Positions 7,932 to 41,068 of a DNA stretch of 51,000 nt are shown piece by piece. The position numbers and the translations under genes are program-made. Source of the stretch: Perkinsela sp. CCAP 1560/9 (Eukaryota; Protista; Euglenozoa: Kinetoplastea); assembly GCA_965644495.1 (NCBI GenBank), contig CBFFSA010000057.1, positions 1 through 51,000 on the forward strand, written 5' to 3'. A model generated the notes under the pieces. That model was not told where the DNA came from and did no database searches. It was given only the letters and a program-made list of their open reading frames with translations. Positions within the stretch are counted from its first letter, which is position 1. Each line of letters opens with the position of its first letter.

Positions 7932-8023
7932 CACTAGGTCATTAATAATGATAATAACCTCAAAAAAGTATCATTCTTGAGGATAATAATTATCATTATT
8001 AACGGTATTAATGACAGGTGGAG
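7932..8023. mobile_element. Small degenerate MITE related to 48178..48473
   Basis: TA-flanked imperfect IR sharing TCATTAATAATGATAAT. Confidence 0.45.
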
Positions 8024-8473: not shown

Positions 8474-8560
8474 CATACCCTAACTAGTAAACTAGTAATT
8501 ACTAATTTACTACTAATGGGCTAGTAATTACTATAGTAATTACTATGACTTACTACTTTT
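8474..8560. mobile_element. Orphan left end of the CATA family
   Basis: CATACCCT followed by TAGTAATTAC subterminal repeats like those of element C. Confidence 0.55.
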
Positions 8561-8939
8561 TTTGATATGTACAAAAGTTTAAATCGTTACAGAGTATGGG
8601 CTGACCGATGTGTATAAAGTGGTTACGATCGTTACTTTACCTTTTAACGAATGTTGCTAGGCCTTGGAAAACCACGAGGGGGTCCCAACCTCAGTTCTCC
8701 TCTTTAAGTTGTGTCCAACTTTCGGAGACGGTATCTTCTCTTATAGAAACAGTATCTTCGTCTATGGAGTAGATTTACTATTCATACCCCTTGTATATTC
8801 GGTAACGATAGGTACGATAGAACATGCACCTACCTACAAGTGGATTGAGGTTAAACATTGTTCACATGGGAAAAACAAGATAAACCGAATGAACGTACCT
8901 AAAAAAACCCAAGTAAACAAAGACACGGATTTATAACTA

Positions 8940-9090
8940 CTGTCCCCCCCCGTTTAAGCGCACCTCGTTTTTCGTGAAAAGTGCGCTTAAACGGGGGGGT
9001 CTGAATCAGTACATAAAAAGTCTGCACCTCAACTCTATGTGCGCTTAAACGGGGGGTCTGATCGGGTGCGCTTAAGGGGAGGGGGGACAG
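8940..9090. mobile_element. 151-bp MITE, TA TSD
   Basis: TA|CTGTCCCCCCCCGTTTAAGCGCACC...GGTGCGCTTAAGGGGAGGGGGGACAG|TA. Confidence 0.85.
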
Positions 9091-9961
9091 TATATCATAA
9101 AGCATGTAACAAGAGTTCAACGATATATTTTCGCTCACTTACGGATTAGAGCTACTTAGATTAGAGCCAAACAAATACATTTTAAGTTCCTATTATTTTA
9201 AGTTTCCTATCTATATTGCTGCAAACGCGACCTTACATTTACAACAGGTGAAAACACGGAGACGACGGCACATGGAGAACGAACTCTAATCAAAGAATCC
9301 CCGAGCATACGAAAACCAGAGCTACCACCATCCCTCATGCTTGATCCTGTAATACCCGACGGGCAACCGACAGAATCAGGCAACATAACAGGTCGGGCGA
9401 GAACGGAGACGCGACTCGTACGAACAGGCAACCATGCCACGAGTCGAACGGGACTTACCCCCTATACAGAAGACCACTTCACACCTACATAAATCAGCCG
9501 CTGTAGCCTCAACTGCATGCTCACTTGCGAAATTTCTTCAACGGCGTCCCTCACCAAGCCACAGCCCCTCCACCAGCAGTACGCAGCCCACCACACCTCC
9601 ACGAACCTCAACGCCAGTGAAGAGCAAGAACAGCCCTCCACCACTCCACCAACTCCCGCCTCTACTCCGGGCTCACCCGACGATACAGAGTACCTTTTCC
9701 GCACAGCGCGATACATACAGGCCATGCAATGCGTTCACCCTGGCCTGCATGTCCTCGGCTTTATGCTCGAAGGAGATGGTCCCCAGGAAATCCGCCGTGA
9801 AAAAGTTGTTTGAAAACGACTTGTTCCCTAAGGAGCCCATCCCCCCGAAGGTGCCCATCCCACCATAGGTGCAGCACCCTACTTACAGACCCCAACGACC
9901 CGCTCTCCGCCGTCCACAATGCCGAATTACTGAGTGCCATATTAGCTGTCTGCATATGAGG

Positions 9962-10170
9962 TTGTCGGACCCCTCCCGCGCGTACCAGGGGGGGTACCCC
10001 CAGGTGGGGGGGTGGAAAGTCATCCTATTCTACCATTTCCCTGCGCTCGATTTCGAAAATCAAAATTTTAAAAATTTCAAAAAACGACGTATGCCCCCCC
10101 TGGAGCCCACCCCATGGACCCCCCATTTTTTTGATTTTTTTTTCGATTTTGGACCACCGGAGCCCTTTTA
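9962..10170. repeat. Dispersed repeat, second copy at 41469..41672; probable transposon end
   Basis: Both copies share ttgtcggacccctcccgcgcgtaccagggggg...ggaccaccggagccc. Confidence 0.8.
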
Positions 10171-10388
10171 TATTTTTTTCTTCTATTATATCACTGTGTT
10201 TATATTTTCACTGTTTTTGTTTACTTTTTTTTCAATAATCGAGGGTAGAGCTGTAGTTATACAACCACCACAATAATCTGTATTAAAGGGGGGAGGTCAG
10301 GGGGGTCCGTATTAAAGGGGGGGTCACAGTATACTTTCGTTATAAACATTTTTAGTAGCTTGCTTGATAGGGCATGTGTACATGTATG

Positions 10389-11252: not shown

Positions 11253-11399
11253 AATGTAGAAGGAGACCAAGTTACCGGTGACACACTTTTTAACGTAATT
11301 AAAATGTATTGAGTCCAACCTTTTAGACTTTCAAAATGTACTTTTTTTAAATTAACGTAGCATAAATTAATATACCGTCCCCCCCCTATTTACTATTTA

Positions 11400-14300
11400 C
11401 ATACCCCTGCCGGGTAAATTGGTAATTACCCGGGTCTGCGACCCAGTTACCCGCACCGACCCGCACCGACCCGCATTGACAGGTCGTCTTAGAAAGCTAC
11501 ATATACATGTATACATCTGTTTGTTGTATCTTGTCATCGAGAAATAAACGTGCATCTTTGTTTCGGACCTTATGGTAAAGTGTTTTAAGGCTAAGTAAGA
11601 AGTCAATAATCATATTACTCTTGTGTTTGATCGCACTAACTAATCTCTGCTTACTTAAACTTATCTGTACTCATGGCTCGTCAACGACGATTAGAGCAGA
11701 CACCTAGCACGCCTGAATTATTTTCTTCATCTGATACTGAAGATGGTAATACCCGAGTCAAAAAAGATGAAGCATCGCGATACTATACGGCACAAAATGA
11801 CAGTAGAATCCTTATCTGGGCAATTCGTGCTCGTGCGCTGTCCTCCCGGATGCACCCACACACACACAGATATTCTCACCGATCCTTTGGGCCAAAAGCT
11901 TCATTTCATATGTACCAAGGAAGGATGCGCTTTTGAATCTCACTCTCGTTATAAAAATGTGTACCACAAGCATCGCCGCGAGTGCTCAAGATCTCTTGAA
12001 AATTCCCGATTGGCACAGGTGGAGAGTGCAAATAATCGGGGAGTAATTGTACAGCGCTTCGTAGGAAAAGTACTGCCATGCTTACAGACCCTAACGAATC
12101 TTTCTTCTAGTCGGTTTGTCTGGCTCGTGCATAAGTACGAGGATTTACGCCCTGATGTACCTGGAACAATGATAAAAAGAGCCCTTCCGGAATCAAATTT
12201 AAAGAAGTGGCACCACTATTGTGAAGTGCTGTCGCATGACATATGGGGAAAACTTTCTGCCGACGTAGACTCGCGTAAGCTCTATGGAATTGCCGTAGAC
12301 GCGGGCATTGACAAGGTAAAGGCTGAACATATCTTGTTGTCTGTGCTGTACGTTGGGTCAGAAGAGTATGTCTTACCACCGATATATTCTCCAAGGCATC
12401 GTGCCTTTGACGGAAAGACGGCAGCTGAGCAGTTGATTTCTACTCTTCTGGCGAACCTTGGTGAAGTTCGTTTGCTCAAAATGAGATACATTATTGCGGA
12501 CGACAGTGCTATAAATCACGTGGCCAGAAACCACTGTGAAGGCGAGCTCAAGCGAATATACGATCGGATTACACCCATTGGTGAGTCTGATACGGCTGCG
12601 CTGTTGCAAGGTATTTCTTCTCTAGTGCCGCGCATTACTCTCCTATCTTGCATCGGACATATGCTAAACAATGTTTGCCAAACAGCCTTGAAACCATACG
12701 AAGAGCTCCCGTGCTTCGCCTTTAAAAAAGCTTTCAGTCAAGCTTTTTACTCCGGAGGACGTGCAAGCGCCATGAAAGGTAAATATCGGGGCGTTGCCCC
12801 GGATTTGGCGCTCGCCCATTTCGATCGAAGTGTCCTAAAAGCAGAAGAAACGTTTCGACAATCATATCATGGACTTGGCGAAGATGTTCCTACCTTCTGT
12901 CGAAAAAAGCTACAGAACACCCTGCTTGAATGTGTGTCGAAATTAAAGGACGTTTCACCGTGCGAGTCGGAACCAATAATTGAGGCACTGTCAACAGATC
13001 AAAAAACGTGGAAAGAGAAGCATTGTCTCCTACTCTCTGAGGGAGTAAAGTTGCTGAAGTCCTTACAAGCGGCACGGGAAACTCGGGGAATTCAAACACC
13101 GAAGCTAGGAGGTGTAACACGATGGTGTACCGACAAATTCACCTGCATGCAGTTCTTGGCCGAGAACATGGCCACTGTCTCGGCATTAGTTCACAATGAA
13201 AGTGAGAAGCCCAAGGCTTCACCCTCCATACTGAAATGTAAACGTTTGCTGGATCAGTTTGGTTTCAGGGCGATCGGTGCCAGTTGCGAAGATTTTCTAC
13301 AGCAATGCAAGATCCTACACAGCGCCTTGCGTAAATTTTCGGACAATGCTGGTAAGCCAATGGCCACGCACGTTGGAACAACGCTGCAACTTTTATTCGA
13401 GCACAGCGAGAGTGAATCTGCACCGGAACTTCTGAAAGAATCTTTGATTTATCACAAAAAGCGCTTGCAGAAAAACCATAACATGCGATTTTGGAGCGAT
13501 ATTCTATGGTTTCGCCCAGCGTGGATCGTGAAATTCGCTCGTCCATGCGCATTACAACCCATTTCAGTGGGTCGAGCGAACAACATATTTGATAAGAATG
13601 CGGATGGAACATCTGCTGAAACTCCGATCTTTGAAATCTCGGCTGACGAGTGGTCGAAGTATGTCTCCTGCTCCGATTATGGTTGGGATCCGACGGTATT
13701 TCTGAACGAGTACGAGTGGTGGTGTGGTCCCGGAAGTGAGATGTTTCCCTCTGTTTGCGAAGCGGCTACGCACTACGTATGGACGCCTCCCTTAGTTAAC
13801 AGATGTGATTCGTGGCTGTCTATAATCGGGTACATGCACAGTTCCAGACAGGCTTCCCTGGCTCCTGATGTCGTTTCTCACCAGATCTTCGTACGTGGAA
13901 ATTGCGACAAATTGGGTTATATTCTTCCGAACGAAGGTGTTTCTCAGGATGGTAGCGATGTTGAAGTATCTGATGTCGAAGAAGATGAATTTGTTATGCA
14001 GTAATGATTAATGTATAATATTTTATTGTTAATATTAATGCTATGCATAGTATCACAGTATCATACACTGCCGTATAAATGTTTTCTATGTGGTGATTCT
14101 TTATAGTTTCACCTTAGTTTGCTAGGACTCGAGGGTAAACTCGACTGGCCAAAAAAAATAAAAAAAAATTGGTACCATTGCGGTGTTAGGGGGTAGGCTT
14201 CCGGTGGGCCTAGGGGGTTCACACCAAAAAAAATAATAAAATAGATGGGCGACACAAGCAAATCAGTAGAGGGAATTCTTCTTATGGAAGGAATTCCTCA

Positions 14301-14507
14301 TCGCTAAAGATACCGTTTCTGTACATAGAGCATTCTGTGCCAATCCTACGAATCAGCACACTTGAGAGGAAATCATTTTGTATTTAATGGCTAGTGCGCC
14401 GATGCGGGTCTGTGTGGGTCGGTGCGGGTAACTGGGTCACAGACCCGGGTAATTTACCCGCACAGACCCGCTAATGGGTAATTACCCATCGACCCGGCAG
14501 GGGTATG
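11400..14507 (+). mobile_element. CATA-family hAT-like transposon 1 (3.1 kb, uninterrupted)
   Basis: TATTTA|CATACCCCTGCCGGGT...ACCCGGCAGGGGTATG|TATTTA; ACCCGCACCG subterminal repeats inverted at the two ends. Confidence 0.92.
11743..14004 (+). CDS. hAT-like transposase with a D-D-D triad (true start possibly 11673, with a 1-nt frameshift)
   Basis: BED-like finger CTKEGC...H...C; IAVDAGID; IIADDSAIN; CIGH; TRW; WW...FP; CDSWLS in the position of ERxFS. Confidence 0.82.
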   Translation: MVIPESKKMKHRDTIRHKMTVESLSGQFVLVRCPPGCTHTHTDILTDPLGQKLHFICTKEGCAFESHSRYKNVYHKHRRECSRSLENSRLAQVESANNRGVIVQRFVGKVLPCLQTLTNLSSSRFVWLVHKYEDLRPDVPGTMIKRALPESNLKKWHHYCEVLSHDIWGKLSADVDSRKLYGIAVDAGIDKVKAEHILLSVLYVGSEEYVLPPIYSPRHRAFDGKTAAEQLISTLLANLGEVRLLKMRYIIADDSAINHVARNHCEGELKRIYDRITPIGESDTAALLQGISSLVPRITLLSCIGHMLNNVCQTALKPYEELPCFAFKKAFSQAFYSGGRASAMKGKYRGVAPDLALAHFDRSVLKAEETFRQSYHGLGEDVPTFCRKKLQNTLLECVSKLKDVSPCESEPIIEALSTDQKTWKEKHCLLLSEGVKLLKSLQAARETRGIQTPKLGGVTRWCTDKFTCMQFLAENMATVSALVHNESEKPKASPSILKCKRLLDQFGFRAIGASCEDFLQQCKILHSALRKFSDNAGKPMATHVGTTLQLLFEHSESESAPELLKESLIYHKKRLQKNHNMRFWSDILWFRPAWIVKFARPCALQPISVGRANNIFDKNADGTSAETPIFEISADEWSKYVSCSDYGWDPTVFLNEYEWWCGPGSEMFPSVCEAATHYVWTPPLVNRCDSWLSIIGYMHSSRQASLAPDVVSHQIFVRGNCDKLGYILPNEGVSQDGSDVEVSDVEEDEFVMQ

Positions 14508-14543
14508 TATTTAGTACTTCGCCCCCTACTTAGTGCTTAATTT

Positions 14544-14947
14544 GGTTAAAGTAAAGCAAAATTCGCCTTTTTTGAAAAAAATTGCTTTACACCCTATCTA
14601 GAAATCTACCTTTGCACTTCTTAGTACAGTGCCACACACTATCCTCTAATTCCATTTCTTTTGTTGATGAGTGTGTCCTTTTTCCACAGAAAACCCTTCT
14701 CGTGACAAGCCCGTGGCTTTGAAGCCACTGCTCGCACTATGCTTCCGTCCGGCGTGATATACGGCTGAGGGTGAACTTTCTTCGACAAGCGAACCCCCGA
14801 CACCCCTGGCATACCATAGAAAATAACGGAAAAAGGGTATACAATAGTCATATACAATATTATGTACGTAGATAATGTCCTTTTGTCGAAAGGAAAAATG
14901 TCAAGCTAAAAAGTTATAAGAAAAGCGAATTTTCTTTTACTTTCACC
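14544..14947. mobile_element. Non-autonomous Merlin element, 8-bp TSD
   Basis: CTTAATTT|GGTTAAAGTAAAGCAAAATTCGC...GCGAATTTTCTTTTACTTTCACC|CTTAATTT. Confidence 0.88.
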
Positions 14948-15121
14948 CTTAATTTCAACGCTTAGTAGAGATTGGCGCGGCAAAGCGGCGCCGATTTTTG
15001 GGTGAAACTGAAGCAAACTTAGCTTTTTTCTTGATTAATTTTTTTTCCTATTTTTTGCCCCCCCAAAAAAAAAATCTTTTTATTCTACTAGGCTTATTTT
15101 TTGATTTTTCGTGATTTTGTT

Positions 15122-17218
15122 ATGCTTTGTCAAGGGTGTGCTGGGTTTTCTTGTCGGGGTGACCTCACATTAAGCAAAGTTGCACTTTGGACCGAGCAGT
15201 AATGTGCCGAATGGATGAAAAGCCACAAGCTGGTAGCCCAGAAAGTTGTGTGCTACAGGAATGTACACAAGTCACCCCAACACATGAAACTCACTGGCGC
15301 AAAGTGGTGGTGTACCAAAAATTGCAACGGAAGGTATGGTGCTTTGGGGCCGCTTGTTCCCGGCAGAGCTCATAGAACCACCAAACAAATGCTGAAATAT
15401 GTCATTCTCTATGTACGGGGCGGGCGTCATGCCGATGCAGAAGCGGAAGCGGAGGTGAGCAACCGAACCGTAGTATCTTTAAGACAGTGGATGGACTCTT
15501 TAATGCCCACTGCTCACTTACGTCGACGCATTCGGAATCGATCATCCATTACTAGAATGCAATGCGATAAAACTTTCTATTCCATCAGAAAGCGCCATCG
15601 TGGACGTCATGGGGCCAGACGTGTACAGTCAGCAAAAAAACCGTTCGAATGTTTCGGTTCTTTTTTTCTTTTGTATAGAGCTATTGATTAAATATCACCG
15701 TTGCGCTGGTAATGTGTGCTAGTAGTGTAGGCATGAGTGTCACCTAATAGTACCCGTGGATAGTTCACCTCAGCTCGTTCTACCAAAGAAATAAGAATGA
15801 ATATAAAAAAGTTTAGAATTCGAAAGGTTTTTTTGCTACCTATTATAGAGAAAATCTTGTCCCAAAAAATAGATGAAACGTAATCGCCCAAGAGAGATTA
15901 TGCCCGTAAAATTAGTATTTAGTATTCCCCCCACGAGCCTTCAGCACTGCCTTCGTACGGGCAGGCATACTGTCCACCTGGGCACGACATACTGAGGGTG
16001 GTATGTTCGCCCATTCCATTTTTACCCTCTCCCACAACTCTCGGACCCCGCTTGGTGGATCATCGTGCGCTGCAAGGCGCCGCTTGAGTTCCCCCCAAAC
16101 GTTTTCGATTGGATTTAAGTCAGGGACTGCGGGGGCCACCGCATGACTTCAAACCCGGTACCGCGGAGGTGCCGTTGCGCACAATGGTTTGTGTGCTTGG
16201 GGTCATTATCTTGTTGGAAGATGACCATTGGGGGGTCTAGACGCATAGTTTCAATGGAGGGGGCAAGATGTTGTGGGAGAGGGTAAAAATGGAGAGAGTT
16301 GTTGGGAGAGAGTTGTTGGGTTCGAGAGTTGTGGGAGAGGGTAAAAATGGAATGGGCGAACATACCACCCTCAGTATGTCGTGCCCAGGTGGACAGTATG
16401 CCTGCCCGTACGAAGGCAGTGCTGAAGGCTCGTGGGGGGAATACTAAATACTAATTTTACGTGCATAATCTCGCTTGGGCGATTACGTTTCATCTATTTT
16501 TTGGGACAAGATTTTCTCTATAATAGGTAGCAAAAAAACCTTTCGAATGCTAAACTTTTTTATATTCATTCTTATTTCTTTGGTAGAACGAACTGAGGTG
16601 AACTATCTACGGGTACTATTAGGTGACACTCATGCCTACACTACTAGCACACATTACCAGCGCAACGGTGATATTTAATCAATAGCTCTATACAAAAGAA
16701 AAAAAAACCGAAACATTCGAACGGTTATTTTGCTGACTGTACGTAGCGATGGAACGCAAGTAGCACAGACTATCGCTGTTACTACCAGATCTAACAAATT
16801 ATCCGAAATTTTCATGGAAATAGTCTCTGATCGCACTGCCGCAACGCTCGTTCCAAAAATTGATGAACTTGCTTCTGGGGGTCGCACTCGAATTTGGACT
16901 GATGGCGCCCGTCATAATCTAAAACTTCGGTCCAAGTACGAGTGACGAAGTGTAAATCATCGTCAGCAATGGGTCACCCCAGACGGGGTACATACAAACA
17001 CTGTCGAATGTGCTAACTCTATGGCTAAGAAGCGTTTGAAGCGTGAAGGAAATGTTTTGGGGAGCAAGCCAGGGAAAAGATCAGACCGAGTTCAAGCAAT
17101 TGCATCAGTTCAAGCAATTGCTGAAAAGTGTAACGGAAGTTTGAAGAGGAACGGCGGGGATGTCATGCTGAGAATCCTCGAGAACTTGCAGACTCATTGC
17201 ACTTGTATTCATCTTTAA
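15122..17218 (+). pseudogene. Merlin transposase with stops, split by T1
   Basis: Zn-ribbon N-terminus, MQCDKT, IWTDG, VNH, HTNTVE; removing T1 rejoins GARRV-RSDGTQ in frame. Confidence 0.85.
15626..16739. mobile_element. Foldback Tc1 derivative T1 made of two 3' halves head to head
   Basis: TA|CAGTCAGCAAAA...TTTTGCTGACTG|TA; ~418-bp inverted arms each encoding ...KARGGNTKY*; QQDNDPKH...PDLNPIE (D34E spacing after correcting one frameshift). Confidence 0.9.
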
Positions 17219-17927
17219 GTTCACAGAGTTATGTAAGAAAGTCTTAAGATATTGAAGTAAGAAAGAAATCAATTTAAATTCATTGTACTGGAAGAGAGTA
17301 GCTTCGAAGTAGAGCCAGGATTCATCGGAAATATCAAAAAATATGAAAAATGCTAAATTTGCTTCAGTTTAACCGATTTTTGATAATATTACATTTCGTC
17401 TGATCTACCCATTTGAAATAAAAGTGGAAACAGTTTCGTTTTCTTGACACGCCCCTCTCTGTTGTATGTCGATTGGACCCCTTTCTGGCTGGTGCAGATC
17501 AAGCCAACCACTCCCTCGAGTTGGTTCACTGACTAAACAGATTGACAGAGCCATCAAAATCTTTTTGATCCCTCTTTCTCATTTGGTGTTCAGTGCCAAC
17601 TATGTTCGCCAACGATTTTTACCACCGGAACCTGTCATCGTGATTCCGTCACCTGAAGAGGTCAGCACTTCATTGGTTCAGGTTGATACCCTGCAGCGAG
17701 AGAAAGAAGCTGTACCCGCGAAAAAACGACGCATTGATTACCCCCCTCTAATAAGTAATTACTATCCCCCCCTATTTACATACCCTGGAGTAATCGATGT
17801 AGTAAATTACTACCGGTTACTACCGATTACTACATTGTTCAGTGTAATTATCTGCTAGTCCCAAAATTTAGTGTGAGTATCACCAATTCTATATCCCGCC
17901 TTGTGGTTGTACATACAGTTGTATATA

Positions 17928-18647
17928 CTGTCCCCCCTACTTAAGAGTCCGCGGGATACCCCCCCCTACTTAAGAGTCCTTTTTGACGGAGCCTCGGGCT
18001 GCCTGCGGCGCGAAGCGCCGCCAGATTTTTTTTTGATTGTTTTCTATTTTCTATGATTTTTTTATGTTGTCTGCCCATTGCGTTTAGTTGCGTTTTTAAT
18101 ATTTCAAAGCTATTTATACTTGATAGTACTCCGAGGAAGGAGTAGACATGGGACACAACCATCCTCCTCAACCCCCTTCAACTCTCTCGCGAACTGATCG
18201 AAGTTCTCCTCCCCTCCGATCACCCTTCTCACACGAGAACGGCAAATCTGCCGACCAACCCCCTTCATCTATCTCCCCATCTAACCAAGGTAACCTTCCG
18301 TTACCCCATTCCGGTAGCCAACCTCGTTCTCTTCTATCCCAAGTGTGCGCGGTATTGCATTACGAATATCATTATATTCTCCTGCATATCAAGGGTCACA
18401 TTTTGAATATTTATGACAGTTTTTTTGAACGTACCTCTGTAGCACGTGGGGTACAGACGCCGATCTTCATTAGACCAAAATAGAGAAAAAAAAATAGAGT
18501 AAAAAAATATAGACAAAAAAGGAACCGGCCATATTGAAATTTTATGAAAAAATGCTGACCCCCTACTTAAGAGTCCGAAAAATTGTGACCCCCCACTTAA
18601 GAGTCCAAATGCCCAAAATCGGCGGACTCTTAAGTAGGGGGGGGCAG
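17928..18647. mobile_element. 720-bp non-autonomous TA element D
   Basis: TA|CTGTCCCCCCTACTTAAGAGTCCGC...GCGGACTCTTAAGTAGGGGGGGGCAG|TA, with internal copies of the TIR motif. Confidence 0.88.
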
Positions 18648-19342
18648 TATGTATTTCATGGTCGAAATGACAATAGTCTTGTAATTTCTACTCTCTCCAT
18701 TGTTCAGTCATGATGCGGCGGGGCACGGGGAAGCGCGTGCGGAAAAGTAGAGAATCTGAATCGGTGGCTGGAGGAGGCGAATCTGTTGATGTGGGTGGAG
18801 AACCTGAATCCCCAAGAGTCACCCGAGAGCAGCGTTCTAATCCTTCAGCGCGTGTGCGCAGGGAATTGTCGAGGGCACTGGGGCAGCGTTTGAATGAATC
18901 TCCAACACAGGCAACAGTAACTACTTCAGGATTGTTAACTCCGAATTCACGACAATTAACACGAGCACGTACGGGAAATGTGGATGATCCTTTGAGATAC
19001 GGAGAGCTATCCTTGTTTTTTAAGTACGAGCTTTGCAATTTCTCTAATTCTGAAAACGAAAATGATTCTACCAGCGCATGCCAGAAAGAACTTGAAACAC
19101 GCACCGACATTGGGACATACCTGCAAGACGCAGCAAACCAACGACGTCATGCAATCTGCCTGTACTGTGGCGCTGTTTTTCACAGCCGTTGCACACAGAC
19201 TTAGAGGGCTGAAACCTGGAGGACCCTGTCACTTATCAGGTGGGATCGGGTGGAATCGGTCGGGATCGGCGCTTGAGTAGCTTCTTAAGATACTGTATTT
19301 TTTACTACTTTGACCTTTTTTCTATCACTTTTTATTCTTTAT

Positions 19343-19441
19343 TAGGCTCTTCGTTAAACGTAGTGGTTGTTTTCAACTTAGATGACACCACTGCTGCACG
19401 CTTCGCCTTGAAAACTACTGCCGCGTTTAACGAAGAGACTA
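19343..19441. repeat. 99-bp hairpin element, copy 1
   Basis: TAGGCTCTTCGTTAAACG...CGTTTAACGAAGAGACTA; homolog at 41069..41167. Confidence 0.8.
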
Positions 19442-19941
19442 AAAAAATGGAGAACGATACTAAAACAACAACGATCGTATCTACAACTTTGCTTGTTAAG
19501 TAGTACTTTACTTGTTAAGCAGAACAGTACTTGCTTTTAGAGGGGGGAAAGTCCTTCAACAAAGTACTTTCAGCAATTCAACCCTGAATGTATTGCATCA
19601 CGCAATTCCCCCCTATTTTTGGGACATTTAGACTAAATACTAAATTAGTATTTTTGTGTGATTCAATTTGTTCCCAAATAATTTCGATGGGGTTGAGATC
19701 AGGAGACTTAGGCATAGTCTAACTAGTATTTTAGTATATACTATAGTATATACTATGAGATACTACTTTTCGAAGGTGTCTATAATCTTATTAAGTGTCT
19801 ATAGAAATGTAGTTTTTCCCTGTATATGAATGGAAAGATTTGTCTTTATTGCGACATTTAGGACTGGTACACAAGTATTGCTCAGCCTTTTTGTTTACAC
19901 CTTATCACTTCCTTTAATCACCTTGTCACTCACTGTTTTAA

Positions 19942-21906
19942 ATGACGCAACGTTCAAAGAACTCGGAAAGCGCACCTTCAACCCCCACCCCTGAAAACAC
20001 AAGAAAGCGACCGTCAGCACGGGAGCTTCGCGAGAGAGTAGCCGCAATTACGTCACAGTTAGAGGAGACACCTTCCCAAGTAGCGTTAAGTGCGTCCCTC
20101 TCTCCCCTTGAAGAGGAGAATGCTCTCCAGAGAAAGAGAAAAAGCAACTGCGGGAACGATCCACTCGCTTGTGGAAGCCTCCGTCGACAGCAGCAATTAA
20201 CGTACGAGCGATGCGATCTCGGCGTTGAGTCCTCTGCAAAATTGTGCCTCGAGTGGGCTCGGAAAAACGTCTCAGGCATCCGGAATGATGCTATGGGCCA
20301 CTCACAGCATGTTCGATGTAAAGTATATGGGTGGGTGACCCATAGCAAGGGGGAGAATTTTTGTTATAAACATTTGAAAGAGTGCTGCTCGAAGGCGCAG
20401 CAGGGGATGGAAGACTCCAGTGAAGTTGCAAATCCCAAGTCGCTAGAGGAGTACATCTCCGAAGCTCTCCCATGTTTCGCAGCTCAGAGCAATCTTTCTA
20501 CCGAAGGATTCCTCGAGTGCGTAAAGAACTTATTTCAAGAATTTCCCCCCGACATACATCCTTCAGAAGCTGCATCGATCCTTCCTTCTCCTCGCGAATT
20601 TCATTCACTTGTTTCCATTCACTTGTTTCATAATATGGCCAAAGATGCAATGCAGCACTACGCAAATCTGCCAATTATGAAAGTAAGAACATACTTCTCC
20701 AGGATTTTCTATGCAGGGGACCGTGTGGGGGCAAAGAAGGGGAAGTATTTCGGAAAAGCTCTTGAAGATAAATTAAGCGCCTTTGACGAAGAGACTCAAA
20801 AAGCTGAATCGTACTTTAAATCTTTTTATCGTTCTGTGAACAGCGAAAAACTTGACAAGAGGGGTCGCAGGGACACCATAGCTCATCTCAAGGAAGCATT
20901 GCAAACTCTCTCGAAAGTATCTTTAAAGGCACGCGATGTGTTTGCCGAACTGAATCAAACTCTGGAAATAGAAGACCAATGTGAGATTCTAATTGCGAAA
21001 GGTGCTAGTGTGGTGAAATCCATTGCACATTCTCATGAAATTCGAGCCGTCACTTCTCCCAAATTTGGCGGGGTCACGCGATGGCTCGCGGATAAATTCG
21101 AAAGCATGAGGTTTTTGGCTGATCAGTTGCCTACTGTCGCATCCTTCATAAAAAGTGAACTGGAAACTCTGCGAGCCCCTCAATCTGTCCACCATTTGGC
21201 TGATTTGTTCGAAAACAACTCTTTGAACGACTTGATGCAGTCTACGAAGGATTTCCTGAAAGACTGTATGCCTTTACGCATCGCACAAGAAAAATTCTCT
21301 GACATGCAGGATCGTCCTATGGCAACTCTTGTTCATCCAACTTTGCGACAGCTTGTCGAGTCCGCTGAGAATGCATCCAGGCATTTCTTAGAGTCGATAC
21401 ATCGGCACGTCAATAGAGTATGCTCAAACCACGAGATGAAGGTATGGGCAGCTGTGATGTGGTTTTCGCCTGAGTGGATCGTCTTATCAGCTCGACCTCG
21501 CAAGAAGGAATCCCTTTCAGTGGAACGGGTAAATGATTTGTTGGGAACTGGCGACCCGATTTTCGACATTACTATTGAGGAATGGAGTACGTACATAAAC
21601 TGCGACGATTACCAGTGGACACCCGGCATGAGCGATCTTGAGTGGTGGCAAACACTTGGGTTGAAACATTTTCCGACAATTTTTGAAGCTGCATTGCATT
21701 ACCTATGGCTTCCTCCTCTAGTGACGGCATGTGACTCTATCCTTTCGGTACTTTCCTGGAAATATTGTGCCCGTCAAGCTCGCATTGGAACAGATGTTGT
21801 AGCGACACAAATGTTTCTTCGCGGAAACGAGAACTCGCTACCATATCGTGCAAGTCGTGCAAAAAAGGCGGCAAAGCGTGGATCTGACACGGAACACTCC
21901 ATATAA
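19942..21906 (+). CDS. CATA-family transposase with an in-frame deletion of the D1-D2 region
   Basis: Homologous to 11743..14004 (PKFGGVTRW, ACDSILS, QMFLRGN) but jumps from LPSPREFH directly to HLFHNMA. Confidence 0.75.
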   Translation: MTQRSKNSESAPSTPTPENTRKRPSARELRERVAAITSQLEETPSQVALSASLSPLEEENALQRKRKSNCGNDPLACGSLRRQQQLTYERCDLGVESSAKLCLEWARKNVSGIRNDAMGHSQHVRCKVYGWVTHSKGENFCYKHLKECCSKAQQGMEDSSEVANPKSLEEYISEALPCFAAQSNLSTEGFLECVKNLFQEFPPDIHPSEAASILPSPREFHSLVSIHLFHNMAKDAMQHYANLPIMKVRTYFSRIFYAGDRVGAKKGKYFGKALEDKLSAFDEETQKAESYFKSFYRSVNSEKLDKRGRRDTIAHLKEALQTLSKVSLKARDVFAELNQTLEIEDQCEILIAKGASVVKSIAHSHEIRAVTSPKFGGVTRWLADKFESMRFLADQLPTVASFIKSELETLRAPQSVHHLADLFENNSLNDLMQSTKDFLKDCMPLRIAQEKFSDMQDRPMATLVHPTLRQLVESAENASRHFLESIHRHVNRVCSNHEMKVWAAVMWFSPEWIVLSARPRKKESLSVERVNDLLGTGDPIFDITIEEWSTYINCDDYQWTPGMSDLEWWQTLGLKHFPTIFEAALHYLWLPPLVTACDSILSVLSWKYCARQARIGTDVVATQMFLRGNENSLPYRASRAKKAAKRGSDTEHSI

Positions 21907-22645
21907 AATAATATCGAACTACATGGCGCACAGAGTATCATACATATAGAGTATCGTAGCATACAGGGTATACATTGCGGTAAATATCAATTGAATTGCG
22001 GTAAATAGAATATATGGTAATATTGCGATAATATTCGTACGTCCAGAGCTCCGTTTTGTGGTATTTCTTCTCCGTATCTGAGATATTTTTCTCTGGTTTT
22101 TTTCTCAGTGTTCAACAAGCGAAATACTTTTTTCGTCCACAGCAACGGTTTATTGTACTATTATGCACTATGTATTGACGTCGGAACTGGGTTCTGTGGT
22201 TTAACTCAGTGTCGTGTAAGTCCTTGAAGTATTCCTTCAGGTATCTTTATCAATTCAGAATAACATATAAAGATATATTTATGCATTGATGAAAATAGCC
22301 ACGTTTAGTATTTTTTATTACACTACAATATATTAATTTTATTCGTATATTCGTGCTACACGCTCTTGATCTGTTTCTTTTCTTACATCATATACCAATG
22401 AAAAATATGTGAGGAAGCGTTTATGCGCGGAATGCGAGATCTGAACTCCTTTCACCCCTCAACTCACTTTTTCACGCACTCGACTCAACTTTCGCTCAGG
22501 ATAAGCATCCTTTCACCTCTCTGTGCGCATCTGCGCTGTGGTAAACCAAATCAATTCCTGATTTTTAAGGAAGTTTATTGGTTGATTTGTTAAGTAACTG
22601 TTGGAGAATGAAGCATTCAGAATATTCTCCTGCTTCCTTTGTCTA

Positions 22646-25600
22646 CAAGTATTGAAGACACGGCACGAATGATGAACTGTTCTGAGAGCTCTGTCTATCG
22701 GTACAAGGCACGTTTTGATGAGTCAGGTGACGTGGCACGTGCGAGCTACTCGCGCGATAATGCCGTTGATACGGAGGAATTCCGTGCTATGCTTTGTACC
22801 CTTGTTGATGATGAGAAAGACACCCCATTCGGGTGTCCGGGGTTTAAATGGGTACACAAGAGAGTGGACAAGACACTTTATCCTTGTAGTCTGAACACCG
22901 TAAAACGGAGTTTGAAAAGGATGGGATACGTCATTAAGACTATGTCACACAAACCTTTCTTAACTGCTGAGCACAAGGCTGCCCGATTACAACTTGCTGA
23001 TTACTTCGATGGATGGAGTCCAGATCAGCTGTCCCGTGTGGTATGGTGTGACGAGAAGATTTTCCGATGTGGTTCACATGGGAAAAAAATCACATATCTT
23101 GCAAAAATCAATGACCCCCCCAAGGAAACACCAGTAGAAATGGATAGGTGGTACGGGGGGAAGGGAGTGCATGTATTCATGGCAACCAGTCTGCGTTGGG
23201 AAGTACCCGATGCGTGTTTCCACGAGTTTTCCCAGAATGAAACCGTAACAAACGAAGTTTTTCTGAGAACAATGAAGAAGCGAAATGGGTTTTTTAACTG
23301 GATGCATCGGCGGCCGGGGGCTGCTGTTGTCCTTGACAATGCGCCAGGGCACGGGGCAGCCCGGAGAATAGGTAAGCTGGAAGGAATTAAAATTATTGAC
23401 TGGCCTTCGAAATCTCCTGATCTCAATTTGATTGAGAATTTGTGGAGTACCGTCACCCCCCCCCCCCACTTGTCCCGACGAAAAGGCCAAAAAAGCGGAA
23501 AAGGAGGATAAGTCGCGTGGTAGGACAAGTCACGTAGCATCAAGAGGAATTGTATGGCACATTTTTGTATGCATCCGTGTACATGGAAAAACTCTTTTTC
23601 GAACTTATTAGGTCGGCTTCAGTACCATCAGCGAGATGGCAGTGCCAGGGAAGACCACGAGGAGGTCCCGACCTTACTTCCCCATTTCCGTTTTGTGCCC
23701 AACTTTCAGAGGAAGTTGTTTTTTTTTACAGAAACGGTAACTTTATCGTTTGAACAGCTTTCCGAATATAACGTGAACGATATATATAACGTGAGACCAC
23801 GTACCAATAGAGTAAATACATTGTATATGAATACAAATGGTGTTTACAAGGGAAAAACAATATCAACTGAATTAAAGCATGTAAAAAAACCCAAGTAAAT
23901 AAAAAGTGCGCGAATATAAATTTTATGAAATATAGGAAAACGTATAACGCTAAAACAGAAAATGCACTTTAAATTTATTCTGCTTTATTATAATACAGCT
24001 ATCATTTTTAATAAAACAGTTTCTGATCTTTAATGAAGTATACAACGGTCATCATTTTCCTCCCCCTTGACTTCAATCGCGCACATATGATGGAAGGTTC
24101 GTTTACAACCATACTCGCTACATTCACGTCTGACGAGATTCACAAGTGTACAATAGCAACACTCTTGTACAACTGCCACGTCGCTTGATTTTGGAAATGG
24201 TGCATCAAAAAAACTATTATTCTCTACCCTTAACTGTGACAACTCACTCGAACAGAACATCGATATGCCTTTCCTTCAAGTACAGAAGCAGTTCCTTAGT
24301 GCGATGTGCCGCGTAAAGATCTAGGACAAACAAAGTCTTGTAAGGTGGGAACTTTGATCGGTCGCAAAACTCAAATTTGGCCCACTGTAAAAATGTTACA
24401 CCAGTCGTCCAACCAGATTTCGACGTAGTGCTGGTACATTTATATTTCACGCTGGCTCGCTTGGTTTCTTGTGCAATGGGTCCAACCTCTGATTGCGCGC
24501 TCCAAATCAGGTGAGGTGGGTTCATTAGGTGCGACCAGGTGTCATCATAATTTTTCGAAGAACGACATCACATCCAACAAGTTGTAATGTTACGCTCTTT
24601 TCCAGTTGTACATATCTTGACGCGCTTGGTTCCACGAAATTCATACGTTAGATTTGCCACAGGCTCCCAGGCAACAGGTGTTTCGTCTCCATGAACAATT
24701 ACTTTGTAACCGCCGCAGTCGGCATTCATGAGAGAAAGTATATCTTTCCAGTTTCGGACTTTTTCTTCTGCATCCACAGGAAGTAACTGGGTGCAACCGT
24801 TCACCCGGCGAACAGAAATGTTTGCCCACTTACAAAAGCGCAACCAGAATGCCTGTTGGCCTCGGTCAGTAAGGTTCCGGAAGTGATCAGAAACTTCGTT
24901 GAAGTATTTGACCATCATGCTCTTGGTCACTGAAACTAGCGACTCTCTCAACACCTGCACAGTTTCCAATCCACCCTGATACACCTCACGATTTCGGAGT
25001 GGAGGGTGATATTGGAATTTGTTTCCGTACCCGAGATGCACAAGTTGCTGCCATTCTTTTTTCTTTGAATAAATTTTGCGTACAGTGCTACAGTCAACCT
25101 TGTATTTTTGTGCCACTTTCGCTTGACTTTTTCCGTTGTCAAGCGCAGCACAAATATTGCGCTTTTGCTGGATTGTGATGTCAACGCGTATTTTTCGCTC
25201 AGATGCACTCTGTGATACGGAAACCTGTTGAGCATTTATTACACTTCCAGACGTGTCTCCCACATAGGGTATCACCGCTGTGTTTTCAGTTTTCGAAGTG
25301 ATGGGTACTAGTACTTGACTAGCGTTGAATGGTTCACAGTTTCGCTTCTTTCTAGACATCATGATTCAAATAGTTTTTAAAGAGATAATATCTGTAGACT
25401 GAGTGTCGTACTTTGTAGAGATAGTCGTAACTGGTTTCTATTAAATACAACTGTATCGGCAACTAAAAAATACGAAAAATATAATTTTTCAAAAATGACC
25501 AAGGGCAGGGGACTACCACGTGACATATCCGCCCTCAAATTCTCAAGAGCGGATATGTCACGTGGTAGGACAAGTGAGGGGGGGGGGACGGTATGATGGA

Positions 25601-26016
25601 TAAGTACATCGACACCCATCTTCGTCCGAAAAATCGAACGGAATTGCAAGCTGCTATTCCTAAGGCGAAGGACTACTTGTTGGCAGAGTGTCACGAGGCG
25701 TATGTGAACACGTTACAGAGTCTTCCCACACGCCTCGCTACTCTACGTGAGCGTGGAGGTGGGAATACTGGATATTAAGACTTAGTTTCTACCGCGAAAG
25801 GCCAAAAATTACTATTTTGCGCTCTTTTTTCAATTTGCAAAATCTCAAAAATTTCAGTTTTTCGACCCATGGGAAAGGCTTGCTTTCATCAGTTTTTGTA
25901 TTCTAAATAGCGTAGACACGATATTCAGAACGAGATCTCTCGTTTGCACAAAAATTAGCTCAAACGGCCTCACGAGGCTAAAATGCGAAGCTAGTCAGTT
26001 TTCGTGGCCCCCTCTG
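22646..26016 (+). mobile_element. 5'-truncated Tc1-like element T2 (DD32E), split by F
   Basis: VWCDEK, VLDNAPGH, SPDLNLIENLWS + MMDKY...GGGNTGY* (25593..25778) in frame after removing F; the right end is the reverse complement of ~6916-7030 and is followed by TA. Confidence 0.88.
23450..25591 (-). mobile_element. pogo-like element F with a broken transposase (25362..24030)
   Basis: TA|CCGTCACCCCCCCCCCCCACTTGTCC...GGACAAGTGAGGGGGGGGGGACGG|TA; CENP-B-type HTH, HGDETP, VLDLYAAH, C-terminal PHD-like Cys/His finger. Confidence 0.88.
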
Positions 26017-26556
26017 TATACTAGCCGAATACTAGTGTTTTAGTATATACTAGTATACTGGTTAGACTATGCTTAGGGGGCCAAGCTAGCATGGTGACAC
26101 TATTTTCATCAAAATGGTGAGGGGTCAAAATCATGAGGGGTCCACTCCGACAGCTCGCGGCACAGCTCTATTCATTTCTGCTTGTGGGCAGCCGTAAGAG
26201 CTGGATGACGGGGGACAGCGCGCAAAATGATGCCTTCACGCTTTAAAGTGCGCGTGATAGAGCGCCGGGAACAATAAAACCCTTCGGACTGAAGGGTTGA
26301 CACGAGGTTCGACCATGAACGGAATTCCATAAGGCAAATCTCGCGTACCTTCACCAATGAGGGTTATAGCTCGGCTGATTATCCACGTCTCCTGTCTCCT
26401 CGTATCGCTGAATCCAACGCTTCGCAGTGTTCTCGTGACAACCTGCTTCGCGTGCGTCAGAGGTTTTACCAATTGGACGAACTTCTTCAACCCCTCAAAA
26501 GGCGTTAGTCGGATAGGAAAATGTTCTGAGCAGGGGTCAAAGTCACAGAGGACGTA

Positions 26557-27635
26557 CTGTGACCCGCCCCTTTAATACGGACAGATTTTTGGACATTGTC
26601 CGTATTAAAGGGGGGGGGTACTAAAGATAAGAAAATGACCCTGTTTTTAAGCTAAAAAATGCGACAAAAAAAGTTTCGCGCCGCTTTGCGGCGCCTGTTT
26701 TTTTTGATGAAATTGGTGAAGGGGGGTGATCTGTAGGGGAAATAAATTTTACGAGCACAACCCAGACTAAAGTGGACGAGGGAGATACTAAACCACAACC
26801 CGGTTTAACATTCCGGGGAGAATGTTAAGTAGCTACAGGAACGTTAACTTTTTTTTTGAGTTTGGTAATCGTATTCTTCAAAACAATGATGGCATAAAAG
26901 TTAACATACCTGTAGCAAGATATCTGTAACAAGATAACATACCGGGGGGTATGTTATCCTGTAACACCATTTACAGGATAATGAGACGTTTCCTTCAGGA
27001 AGTAAAAAGTTCGATTATTTTGAGTCGCCTTTTTCCGATATACCGTAGACCCACCAGTAATAGACCCCCCAGTAACAAGGATTTGGCTCGGGAGGGTGGC
27101 TCAAGGGGGGAGGGGGATTTGGGCGGGGTGAGGGGGGTTGCGCGGGAGCGAGTGTTCTTCTTTTACCCTAAATGGGTTGCCCGGGCTGCTCCGATTTTTC
27201 ATGCGCTGATGAGTGGTCCAATACTTTGCTTTATATGCAACGGAAGAGAGCATCATATTCCGGATAAAAATCATGCTCTTATGTATGAGGCCGTTACTTG
27301 TTCGAAAGGTCATGAGCCACTGGTACGTACTCTTAAGGAAGATCATTGGTTATGCTTCGATATAAAGTGCCGCGGTAAAACTTATTTTTGGGAACCTCTT
27401 CTGACGGCCGCACATGGGCGCACCGCAAACCAGGTTTTTAAAGTCTTATACGGTATCACTTCTGTAGCCGGCTACTGATCTCAACGAAGAGTGGACTTGG
27501 GGCAAAAGCGATCACTCGGCTGACAAACATCCCTTTGAGTCGTGCTCTCGAACAATGAAAATCGAAAAAATAGAAATCGAAAATTTTCCTTCCAAAAAAC
27601 TTCAAAAAATTCCGTATTAAAGGGGGGGGTCACAG
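26557..27635. mobile_element. Element H, CTGTGACCC family, TA TSD
   Basis: TA|CTGTGACCCGCCCCTTTAATACGGA...TCCGTATTAAAGGGGGGGGTCACAG|TA. Confidence 0.85.
27209..27478 (+). pseudogene. Merlin-like N-terminal Zn-ribbon fragment
   Basis: LCFICNG...CSKGH...WLCFDIKCRG...EPLL...RTANQVFK aligns with the M1 N-terminus. Confidence 0.6.
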
Positions 27636-30600
27636 TACTTTAATTCAAAGAACGCTCAGCTAAAGCAAAAGAATCAGACGACAAAGGATACACGCAGCAG
27701 AGATTTGCACTCAAGTCCAAAAGAGCGAAAGAGGAGAAACAAAAATGTATAGGGGCTTTCTATTTAATAGTAAATGTTTGTTTAGCTTCTCCTACCTTCA
27801 TATGAACATTGTTTTTGATTTTTAACAATTGAATGAGTTTCTGTAAAAAAATGGTCGCTATTTCTTTCGCCGAATTTCTTGAACTCGCGTTTTCACCAAG
27901 TCTTTTCTTCCACGTAAATTCAACCAGGACCGGTGGGATCGGCCGGGATCGTAAATCCCTAGTTTCAGCCCTCTTATTATGTGCACAAGAACGAACGCTG
28001 TAAAGTGCTTCATAACCGAGAACAGCAGGATACCCAGTCGAATGTTGTCAAGTGCGTTGATTTCATAAATGAAGGCCTCTCATGCTTGGCCGCTAAGAGC
28101 AGCATGTCAACGGAAGCCTTCCTTTCGTTCGTACGATCATATGAAGAAATACGTCCAAACAGTCCACCAGCAGAAATACTGTCTCATTTGCCTTGCCCGA
28201 AGACTTTTCATGTGAAGGAAAAAATTGTTGCTAGTAAACTTTGGGAAACGATTCGTGCAACCGTGAAGCAGCACTCATTTTTTGGACTAGCTGTAGACGG
28301 GGGAATAGATAATGTCAAACATCAACACATAGTTGTAAGCGTAATATATCGGAGAAAGTTCGTTTGTGTTGCCACTTGTATATCATAAGCGAAAAAAGGC
28401 CTTTAGTGGAGCCGAAATGTCCGCACACCTTATGACTATGTTAAGAAGAGGTTTGGGAGACGATGTCTTAAAGCTGCGGTACTTGATGGTGGACGGATGC
28501 GCAGTTGATCATGTTGCACGTGCCGCCACAGAAGAAGCACTTAAACAATTTTATGAGCGGTACGAAGAAGTAGGTACTCTTGACAAAGAGCATTTGTGTA
28601 ACGGGGTGCGTTCTGTTGTTCCATGCGTTCGTGAGCTTTCTTGCTTCGGTCACCTAGTAAATTTAGTTGCTCGTGAAGCGCTTGCTCACTATCGTCAACG
28701 TCCTTTTATGCAACTCCGCGACTCTTTCGCGCGCCTGTTTTATTCGGGAGGAAAACCTAGCGCCAAGAAAGGAAAGTACTTGGGGAAAGCTCTCGAGGAC
28801 CTTGTATGCCCGTACGACACGACTACGAGCGAGTGCGTAGAATTTTTTTCGCAGTGGTGTTCCTTGCCTGAAGAAACTCCTCTCACTGAAGCTATTTTAC
28901 AGAACCATTTCAGTAAACTATTGAAAGCACTAGAAGGACTCCAAAGAGTATGTGGGCTAGATCTAAGTGATATCAAATGAGTACTTTCGTCAGACACCAG
29001 CTCAGAAAGTAAGCAGGAAGCATTGAAGCAACAAGGACCAAAAATTGTTGATGCGTTGCAGAAGGCTCGGCAAGTTTCCACTACCCGCTCCAAAGCTTGG
29101 AGGCGCTACGCGATGGTGCACAGATTATTTTGACAGTGTTCAGTACCTAGCTACTCAGATGCCAGCGATTATATCGTACGTGCAATCTGAAATTGAATCT
29201 GGACGGCCATCCAAATCTGTTGAACGGTGCGCAAGCATCGCGGTTGCGAACAGCATGGAAGATATGATGAAGGAGGCGAATATGTTCTTACAGGAATTGA
29301 AGCCTGTTCACGACATACTGAAGGAACTTTCTGACGTACGGGACAGTCCTATGGCGCTGATTCCCTACCGCGCTACTAAACTTTTACTCAGAGAGGCTGA
29401 TCGTGAAGGTTGCCCCGCAGAGTTAGGTGCGGCTCTTCGAAAACACCTAGACGGACTGCAGCAAAAGTCGTTCATGTTCTTCTGGGAGGGAGTGATGAGT
29501 TTTTCACCAATGTACGTACTCATGGTTCGAGAGCATAGGGAAGAGGCCGGCACGATCATTGGAGTTGACGGGGCTAACGATCTCTTCAAAAGTGGGACAC
29601 CAGTGTTTGGAATTATTGCCGAGGTTTGGTCTGAATACTCGTCCGGCAAAGGTTTTGACCGCGATCCAGCCGAGCATAAGACGGCCTGGAGTTGGTGGCA
29701 GTCAAGAGGGCGGGAATTGTTTCCCACTATTTATGAAGCTGCTCGTCACTACCTCTTTGTTGTCCCTGTTGTCACCGAATGCGACTCTCTGCTTTCCATC
29801 ATGGGATGGAAGTATGATGCACGGCAGGCTTTTCTAGAATCTGACGTTATTGCGACACAGATGTTCCTCCGCGGTAATTTGGAGAATATTGGATTTTCGT
29901 GAAGCTGGTTTGACAAGAAAGCGACGTTTATAGACTTTTGCTATACCTGTAGTACATTTTTTTAAGTTTACTTAGGGTTTTTTTTCCGTGAGTTCTTGGT
30001 TATGATCATACGCTCGTGGCGCAGAGATACGTCTCTCTGTGTGACGGCCGATACCATCGGCGCATGACCCGCATACGACGGGTGTCACACAGAGAGTGGA
30101 GTGCGAGGTAGGAGACGAGACGCCCATCGGTCATGCTACAGCACGTATAGCCATGGTTCATGCTGCAACACGGTCAAGCCGTGGGTTCATGCTGTCAGAT
30201 GGTCTATCGTGGATCATGATGCATCATGGGGAGGTCCGTTACCGCCGCACTCGCTACAGCATGTAGGGAGAGAGGGGTGCAAGTTCGCATCCCCTATACA
30301 CGCATACAACGTGTCCTCCCGCTGTAGCACGCCCAGTGGTCCTCAAGGGAGGCCACCATGGCGCATAGCTCCCGGGAGAAGAAAGCACGAGAAGGAGAGA
30401 GCCGGGGAGGGAAGAAAGCTCACTCGAAGAGAGCGAGCCGGGGAGGGGTGAAGAGTGCGAAGTGCGTCCCCTACTTCCGCGACAAAGAGGGACAGTTTCA
30501 GCTAGCCGTCAGCCGGAAACGGGCATTTAAAAGTAAGAATACGCCCGTTTCCGGGAAAAGAAAGGAAGGGCTAGCAAAATGTACCAACAAGGTACAGAAA

Positions 30601-32202
30601 CTGGTCTTGTTTTTCCCTTTGTAAACATACAAGTTTGAAGTTTCTTCCGTTCTATATTCTATAATATTATATTCGTTCATGGAAAATTTTTATAATTGTT
30701 GTTTGAATAGTAGTATTTCGTGTGATGTCATGAAAGAAGATAAAGCATTTTTGGTCTAATTTTTAATGTTAAGATATACATCTCAAATGGAGGGTTTAAA
30801 TGAGGTGTGTCATTCAATCGAAATGCAACGTAATAACTCCATGCAAAAGACAGTTGTAGACAATGTAGAGTTGCAATCTATTTGCTTCATACACAGTGAT
30901 AATCATAATAACGTCCTCTGGTGTGATCATCATACACACATGTATCTTTAGAAGTTTTTGCCAAATCTCAACAACCTACATAGTTTATGACACCGCGAGG
31001 AGTGTCTTTATGTCGCATCGGTTCTTTTGTCTGCCTCAACCATGTCCGAAACTGCTGCTCCACACTCTCAAAAGTCGCATGAAGTAATCGACGTAGTAAT
31101 CAGTATTCGGTGTAGTAATCAGTAACCAAAATGTAGTAATTTACTACCGATTAAACATCATGTAGTAATTTACTACATGATTAATCCAGGGTATGTATTT
31201 AATATGACTCCGATTTTGGGCAAAATGCCCTTTTAAAGGGGGGTACATGGAAAATAATGTGAAAGAAAAAAAATCGGCGGATTCGATTTTTTTTATCTTC
31301 CCTGAAATCTATTTTGGCCTTCCAGACAAAATGGCCGTATTAAAGGGGGGGTCGTACGTAGCCCTATTAAATAGGGAGGGGATAGTATAAATACAAATTA
31401 TAAACGTTTTGGATTTATCTTTATAATTATAAATATATTTATAATTATAAATGGCTTTTAGGTGCTGTAAACCCAATTCCGAGAAAAATGGACCCCTTTT
31501 AGACCAAAAAAGCTGTTCTGCGTATCCGGATTTTCGTATTTTTCACTGCCTTGCCGCTCCGAGCCGCTCAGATGACGCTTCACCCCTCTTGCTTTGCTTT
31601 AAATTTCGAGCAGACTCATTTTTGTTTATAAATAAGAAGTATTTATAAATCTTGAGAACAGGGTAATTTATAATTAGTTGTTAGAGGGGGGTATACTATC
31701 CTGGAGAATATCCTGGAGAATATTTACTCCTGGACGATATCGACGAGATATAATTTATGATATCTCGATATTCTGGATTGGATTCCCCGATATTCTAGTT
31801 CGATATCGACGAGTGTCCTGAAGTTCGATATCAGACGTTGCAAAAACAAAAAATATCAACGGGAGCACAGCCAAAAACGCGAATACGTCTAGGTTGCGGT
31901 CGCGCTAATCAACACCACCCTCCTCTGAAAAATCGCGAGCTCTATGAAGAAGGTACTTCGATGCTCCACATACTAAGGGAGGCAATGGTCGGAGTCACAA
32001 AGCCTATGATGTTCAAGTATTTTGCAGAAGTTTCCCAGCATTTTAGTACCCTCACTGAGAAAGGACAGAATAAGTTTGGGCTGCGATTATGTAAGTATGC
32101 AAACATTATTCGTCGCCGAGTCAATGGCTGTACACAAATGGTTCCTGTGGCTCCGTGTTACAAAGCTACATGCATCAGTACTGAAAACCAATGGGAACAT
32201 GT

Positions 32203-32260
32203 GAGGGGCTGCGGGTGTGATCTCGCGTGATCTCGTCTTGGTCCTCACCCGCAGCCCCTC
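32203..32260. mobile_element. 58-bp MITE, GAG...CTC ends, 4-bp TSD (Sola2-like signature)
   Basis: ATGT|GAGGGGCTGCGGGTG...CACCCGCAGCCCCTC|ATGT; solo ends at 44914 and 47052. Confidence 0.8.
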
Positions 32261-32714
32261 ATGTTATGCTACCTCCTCATTTGATCTGAGGAGCGTCATC
32301 ATTTTCCGGCCCCATTTCGCGTGATGGCGCCCGTGCCGCAAAAAAATATGGGTGCACGTCGACTACAAAGAAAACACTGGGGATGACTTTTATGAAAGGA
32401 TTAAATACGAAATCTATTTATAAAGAAAAATACGTCGCATCAGCCGCCCTATGTGCACTAGTACGTTACTTATCTTAGTGTGCTACTACTTTATCCTAGT
32501 ACGCTACTTATCCTCAAACTGCCTGTTTTGAAGACGAAATGCGGAACATCTAATGGGGATAACGATAGATGTGTATACGCTTTACTACACTGACATGATA
32601 CTGTACAGATGATGCACATCAGCTAGTCACTGACGGTTCAAGGTCCATTTTTATAGGGAGCTGTTTTCTTGGGCAGTCACCCGTAGACCTTCCTGTTTGG
32701 AAGTTCTGTCAACC

Positions 32715-41060: not shown

Positions 41061-41068
41061 CCTCCCAT

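Follow-up and report, generated by a model that had tools for sequence, protein, structure and literature searches.

A nest of DNA transposons eight elements deep in an intergenic gap of a Perkinsela-like kinetoplastid

Introduction

Maize-type nested transposon clusters are known, in which elements bounded by target site duplications (TSDs) are inserted into one another, mostly between genes, the inner ones being the younger. Chronologies have been constructed from such transpositions into transposons (PMC3014933). The first DNA transposon described in kinetoplastids was Merlin, found in Perkinsela and Bodo saltans without terminal inverted repeats (TIRs) or TSDs and judged inactive; safe havens relative to polycistronic transcription were proposed in the same paper (PMC8101967). 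No class II elements were found in 57 trypanosomatid genomes (PMC12278014). The sequence studied here, referred to below as the window, makes up an entire 51-kb contig (C57), one of 110 in a 21-Mb assembly, and it contains, at positions 11375-32450, a nest of transposons eight elements deep. This nest shares with maize-type clusters the TSD-bounded insertion of elements within elements, the younger age of the inner ones and the concentration between genes, but it consists almost entirely of class II elements, lies in an intron-poor protist assembly and has a partly empty allele. Like the Merlin elements of Perkinsela and Bodo, its components are DNA transposons of a basal kinetoplastid; here, however, the Merlins are bounded by TIRs and 8-bp TSDs and are matched by empty alleles, and they are accompanied by hAT, Tc1 and pogo elements. 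Nests as such being known already, the value of this one lies in the setting, that is, recent and diverse DNA transposition in a basal kinetoplastid; a literature search, thin on subscription journals, found no papers on active DNA transposons in kinetoplastids or prokinetoplastids.

Structure of the nest

The order of the elements, from the outside in, is P0b > A > B > C > E > G > T2 > F (Table 1). Inverted ends and exact TSDs are present on both sides of A, B, C, E, G and F, at the positions given in the initial annotation of this DNA, but not of T2, P0 or the segment then called "T3"; ends and TSDs were also found for the side inserts that it listed (element 1, two Merlins, T1, D, H and a 58-bp miniature inverted-repeat transposable element, MITE). 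Excision of the inner elements restores host sequences, with B, C, E and T2 matching free copies and P0a matching C23, the allelic contig of C57 (the other chromosome copy). Two copies of C elsewhere in the genome are uninterrupted at both the E and the D sites and read CTQT-YYVH, as had been proposed; many copies of T2 are uninterrupted at the F site and read NLWS-MM, and the join proposed as WPP-KSPDLNPIE is read, as WP-P, in E copies and in C23. A free B MITE carries intact the TIR that C splits. The joins are, thus, not due to chance, as free copies of C, T2 and B read through the same sites; in all, uninterrupted family copies were found for B, C, D, E, G, H and T2. The restoration of the TIRs of both A and B had been claimed; it holds for B through the free MITE, whereas A was rejoined by TIR match, and P0b by protein homology. 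Elsewhere, A is represented by its right part only, at other loci.

The nest had been described as nine levels deep, but E and "T3" are one element, leaving eight. Full E copies hold a Tc1-like open reading frame (ORF) between the 12-bp ends of E itself, with no inner TIR pair, and "T3", which has no ends of its own, was rejected as an element. T2 is not the clean insertion that had been supposed: only its right junction remains, a deletion at 22644 having taken about 330 bp from its left end and about 100 bp from G. Nor do the 21 kb collapse to one pogo element. The removal of all inserts leaves a residue of about 1.15 kb consisting of two fused fragments from different pogo families, with no right end. 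Two P0a copies (L043 and L045) follow P0a to 17545 and then continue into an ORF of their own, L045 extending on into the right TIR, whereas the window switches to the P0b family at 17545-17563. A search for the right TIR of either family near 32450 found none, and a single pogo element at P0 was rejected. P0a hosts element 1, Merlin1 and Merlin2, but the deep nest did not arise within it. P0b has no TIR at either end, the termini of its family, as present in L048 and L049, being absent from the window, and its pogo homology ends near 32390. Its two halves around A belong together because one unbroken pogo ORF (in L028) matches both; P0b is also homologous to F (58% at the amino-acid level). 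The ID-YTILE rejoining proposed at this site does join homologous pogo ORF halves, but only for about 12 codons, after which the frame is broken once more. The TATTTA-C-TATTTA repeat beside element 1 was considered as an excision footprint and rejected, the same repeat being present in the uninterrupted P0a copy L043.

The inner nest could, in principle, be a chimera assembled from near-identical repeats. Other copies of T2 and G match those in the nest at 98-99% identity, and the evidence on the junctions comes from assembled contigs. This is, nevertheless, very improbable: each level has matching TSDs and frame-exact joins, the outer layers occur on both haplotypes, and a second assembly (ENA ERZ24900291, contig ctg3917l) is 100% identical to the window over 9942-31906, that is, across the nest, differing further right. 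The right junction of G with E is also spanned by a contig of an independent run (X3). The F-free T2 joint was seen in four public runs. The nest is unusually deep but mechanistically ordinary.

Table 1. Transposable elements of the nest and its side inserts, from the outermost inwards (window positions; collapsed, length after removal of inserts; C23, state of the allelic contig)
Element	Level	Position	Strand	Description	TSD	C23
P0a		11375..17545	+	left ~260 bp (collapsed) of a pogo-type family		shared
P0b	1	17563..32390	+	internal part of another pogo family (17563-17740 + 31694-32390)		shared
A	2	17741..31691		325-bp MITE (collapsed), ends presumably pogo-type	TA	shared
B	3	17762..31385		201-bp MITE (collapsed), family of >20 copies	TA	shared
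C	4	17779..31195	+	hAT, CATA ends, inside TIR of B	TATTTA	shared
E (incl. "T3")	5	19204..27973	-	Tc1-like, 1,324 bp (collapsed), 12-bp TIR starting GAG	TTA	shared
G	6	19713..26071	+	hAT, CATA ends	CTTAGG	absent
T2	7	22644..26016	+	DD32E Tc1 in right end of G	TA	absent
F	8	23450..25591	-	pogo	TA	absent
element 1		11400..14507	+	hAT, CATA ends	TATTTA	absent
Merlin1		14544..14947		non-autonomous	CTTAATTT (8 bp)	absent
Merlin2		15001..17374	+	Merlin-type ORF split by T1	GATTTTTG (8 bp)	absent
T1		15626..16739		foldback element, 426-bp arms, inside Merlin2	TA	
D		17928..18647		720-bp element in left part of C	TA	shared
H		26557..27635		1,079-bp element inside E	TA	shared
606-bp repeat		29998..30603		inside C; missed by the initial annotation		absent
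58-bp MITE		32203..32260		GAG ends, putatively Sola-like	ATGT	shared

Comparison of the two haplotypes

The locus was compared with its allele on C23, which is 95-99% identical to the window; the two contigs diverge by 2.2% in the nest and 1.3% in genes. The outer layers are shared, whereas C23 has empty sites with a single target copy for element 1, for each of the Merlins and for the G block as a whole (G, T2 and F). The five outer layers are, therefore, older than the haplotype split, and G arrived after it, G, T2 and F being present on one haplotype. The successive nested insertion that had been proposed is thus supported, with C23 placing the outer events before the inner ones, but the idea that families alternate in time finds no family succession. 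The hAT, Tc1, pogo and Merlin superfamilies all have haplotype-specific inserts and were, therefore, active in the same period; a succession of families read from the nest order was rejected on these grounds. The nest dates events, not families.

As G, T2 and F are jointly missing from C23, the haplotypes give no order among these three, and G might have arrived in E already carrying T2 and F, in which case the order of the inner events at this locus would differ from the nesting. G retains both termini and a perfect TSD, as expected of such a composite. Its right subterminal region is, however, partly deleted, other copies of G have no T2 at that position, other copies of T2 have no F, and no such composite was seen elsewhere, so that a composite arrival seems unlikely. 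One further copy of G (G000:C4:208802-218608) has two nested inserts of about 1.4 and 4.8 kb, judged from match coordinates only.

C23 has inserts of its own: a Merlin in E, an intact Tc1 of 397 amino acids and a 1,489-amino-acid ORF resembling that of a non-long terminal repeat (non-LTR) retroelement. The Tc1 appears from its sequence to be intact, with a DD32E spacing, and is a candidate active copy. This haplotype-specific element (L022:2160-3760; C23 12178-13740, empty at window 10384) lies just downstream of a leucine-rich repeat (LRR) gene. The non-LTR-like ORF belongs to a C23-only insert of 5.8 kb (L021:4218-10000, empty at window 5790) that also contains a nested Tc1 fragment and lies 24 bp before the start codon of a host gene. 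Two more transposon clusters, at 5970-10330 and 41030-45800, vary among C57, C23 and ctg3917l, the last of which takes the C23 form at 41213-45541.

Transposon families

Element 1, C and G share CATA ends, and the CATA elements are hAT transposons as judged by sequence and modelled structure. Pfam alone gave their transposases no class, and a first profile search of the PDB was blank until a deeper alignment was used; the profile of the CATA transposase relatives then matched Hermes (E 3.5e-11). The predicted model (pLDDT 88) has best structural matches in Foldseek that are all Hermes, as well as matches to Atlas hAT clusters, and the CxxH, RW and C-terminal motifs are kept. Two features depart from the standard hAT pattern. 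The TSD is 6 bp long in 10/10 CATA elements with both ends, rather than 8 bp, and the third position of the catalytic triad is Asp in 48/49 relatives, aligned to the SER motif and catalytic Glu of Hermes, giving DDD rather than DDE. A 6-bp TSD has been described for hAT6, as an exception to the 8-bp rule (as cited in PMC12730594); the likeness is one of TSD length. A relative with 30% identity and the same motifs is present in the transcriptome of Papus ankaliazontas, which suggests a native prokinetoplastid hAT lineage. Element 1 has an ORF of 753 amino acids (11743-14004) with a D/D/D triad, and its family has 41 ends in the genome; the transposase of C is frameshifted. The ORF of G (19942-21906) is open for 654 amino acids without the first two catalytic Asp, both of which were taken by an internal deletion of about 480 bp that left a short duplication in its place. 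A fourth CATA hAT family (L081:7789-11277), with an 864-amino-acid ORF, the TSD TATATC and three full-length members, provides the best candidate for an autonomous element.

T2 has the HTH_Tnp_Tc3_2 and DDE_3 domains of Tc1, the WP..SPDLN.IE motif and a TA duplication, but its spacing, like that of the intact Tc1 of C23, is DD32E rather than DD34E. The E family departs further from Tc1, with GAG ends and TWA duplications. Collapsed E and an uninterrupted copy of 1,310 bp have 94% identity, two C copies with an empty site demonstrate the 3-bp TTA duplication, and 18/20 E family ends are flanked by TAA, TTA, TGA or TCA rather than TA; the spacing, counted by hand across broken copies, appears not to be DD34E. 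Among ITm elements, Zator and Tc4 have 3-bp TSDs, and Zator is recognized by a TP36-derived transposase. A Zator identity for E is disfavoured by the 49% identity between its transposase and a TA-type Tc1 in this genome. Assignments of E to hAT/Ac-like or PIF elements were rejected, the interior being a Tc1-like ORF in the copies examined. A 3-bp TSD, TAA, has also been described for Fot-type pogo elements (PMC7386202). Unrelated interiors (L014, L017, L036 and L055) carry the GAG terminus of E and TWA flanks, and this sharing suggests that TWA duplication is common to a larger group that has MITEs of its own. F encodes a CENP-B_N domain (E 2.8e-7) and is a pogo element, to which P0b is assigned by homology.

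Merlin1 and Merlin2 both have GG termini and 8-bp TSDs. Merlin2 presumably belongs to the family that its motifs and termini indicate, the IS1595-type motifs having been read by eye.

The hAT, Tc1, pogo and Merlin insertions that are bounded by TSDs and differ between the haplotypes imply recent transposition. It seems plausible, and on balance probable, that at least four class II superfamilies form a currently active community in this genome. Among them would be a hAT lineage of prokinetoplastids not described before, which has the DDD triad and 6-bp TSDs and may favour MITE ends, and a Tc1 lineage switched to TWA. Such a community would overturn the view of kinetoplastids as holding only inactive Merlin relics, and the loss of DNA transposons in trypanosomatids would become a question of many superfamilies. 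The DDD hAT and the TWA Tc1 are testable transposase variants, and comparison of the two haplotypes allows the safe-haven idea for polycistronic genomes to be examined by direct counts.

Origin of the pile-up

Two causes of the nesting had been put forward: targeting of elements by other elements, or selection leaving only transposons as safe sites. None of the 11 haplotype-specific inserts lies in coding DNA, though genes hold 41% of the shared TA sites (P 0.003), and 7/11 lie in transposons, which make up 58-61% of the non-coding target sites (P 0.5-0.6). Avoidance of genes therefore suffices, since the share falling in transposons equals their non-coding share; selection against gene insertions is supported, and element targeting is not needed. 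The explanation that we consider likely is that an intergenic gap turned into a sink for several co-active cut-and-paste families. Each family would have used its usual short AT-rich target (TA, TWA, a loose 6-mer or an 8-mer), gene insertions would have been purged by selection, and insertions into earlier elements would have been harmless and would have widened the neutral target, so that the pile grew by feedback. Broken copies may have been mobilized in trans. The intact 397-amino-acid Tc1 of one haplotype and the three 864-amino-acid hAT copies speak for the explanation as a whole.

Active targeting, for example by a hAT preferring a C-run plus TATTTA in pogo-type MITE ends, appears improbable as the cause. 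C and element 1 did both insert at TATTTA in pogo-type ends, two more C-run cases are known (C4:50931 and L087), and the exact context has a background of about 0.1% of AT-rich sites. The C-run motif was, however, derived from the window itself and shows no genome-wide excess, with 36 matches 5-8 bp before CATA ends versus 38 in the control, and none of the other ends of the element 1 family lies 5-8 bp after a C6 run. G entered the Tc1 ORF of E at CTTAGG, and the hAT target 6-mers are diverse. Strict TIR targeting by CATA elements was rejected on the lack of genome-wide excess; a weak sequence bias of CATA insertion is possible but cannot build the nest, and targeting is at most weak.

Several points weigh against a sink maintained by selection, or against the nest beneath it. 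Only 11 events were counted, in a window picked for its nest and with an incomplete repeat mask, and the 606-bp repeat and two larger blocks, which have no TSD, could be deletions in C23. Avoidance of genes could reflect avoidance of chromatin instead of selection. In four cases, a CATA element entered a MITE end at a C-run or 7 bp away from one. The second assembly is probably from the same sample, and the F junctions and the G/T2 deletion junction (22644) are bridged by no listed public contig.

Host, locus and other repeats

The host genes of C57 are intronless and almost all on the minus strand. The nest is flanked by an LRR gene on one side and a 401-amino-acid ORF on the other, and its locus is an intergenic gap within a same-strand gene cluster. 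The host groups by sequence with Perkinsela-like kinetoplastids. Its Fcf1 is 72% identical to a cluster containing Perkinsela sp. CCAP 1560/4, and about 60% identical to trypanosomatid proteins; the Fcf1 tree, based on one short gene and of modest support (86/80), places it beside the Perkinsela clade, with CCAP 1560/4 as its nearest named relative. The REH2 domain is present in the sister assembly, as expected of a kinetoplastid host.

The 606-bp repeat has more than 30 copies, most of them 95-100% identical and often next to fragments made up of its right half; no TSD was found for it. A search of Rfam gave no match. A free copy of T1 with 98% identity is present in L081. The assignment of the 58-bp MITE as Sola-like comes from its GAG termini and 4-bp TSD; members of this putative family, with GAG ends, ANNT duplications and dozens of copies, also lie at 44851-44914 and 47046-47089. 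The transposase ORFs of the nest, all but those of E and F, are antisense to the minus-strand host genes, in numbers too few for significance; this bias agrees with the safe-haven idea of PMC8101967.

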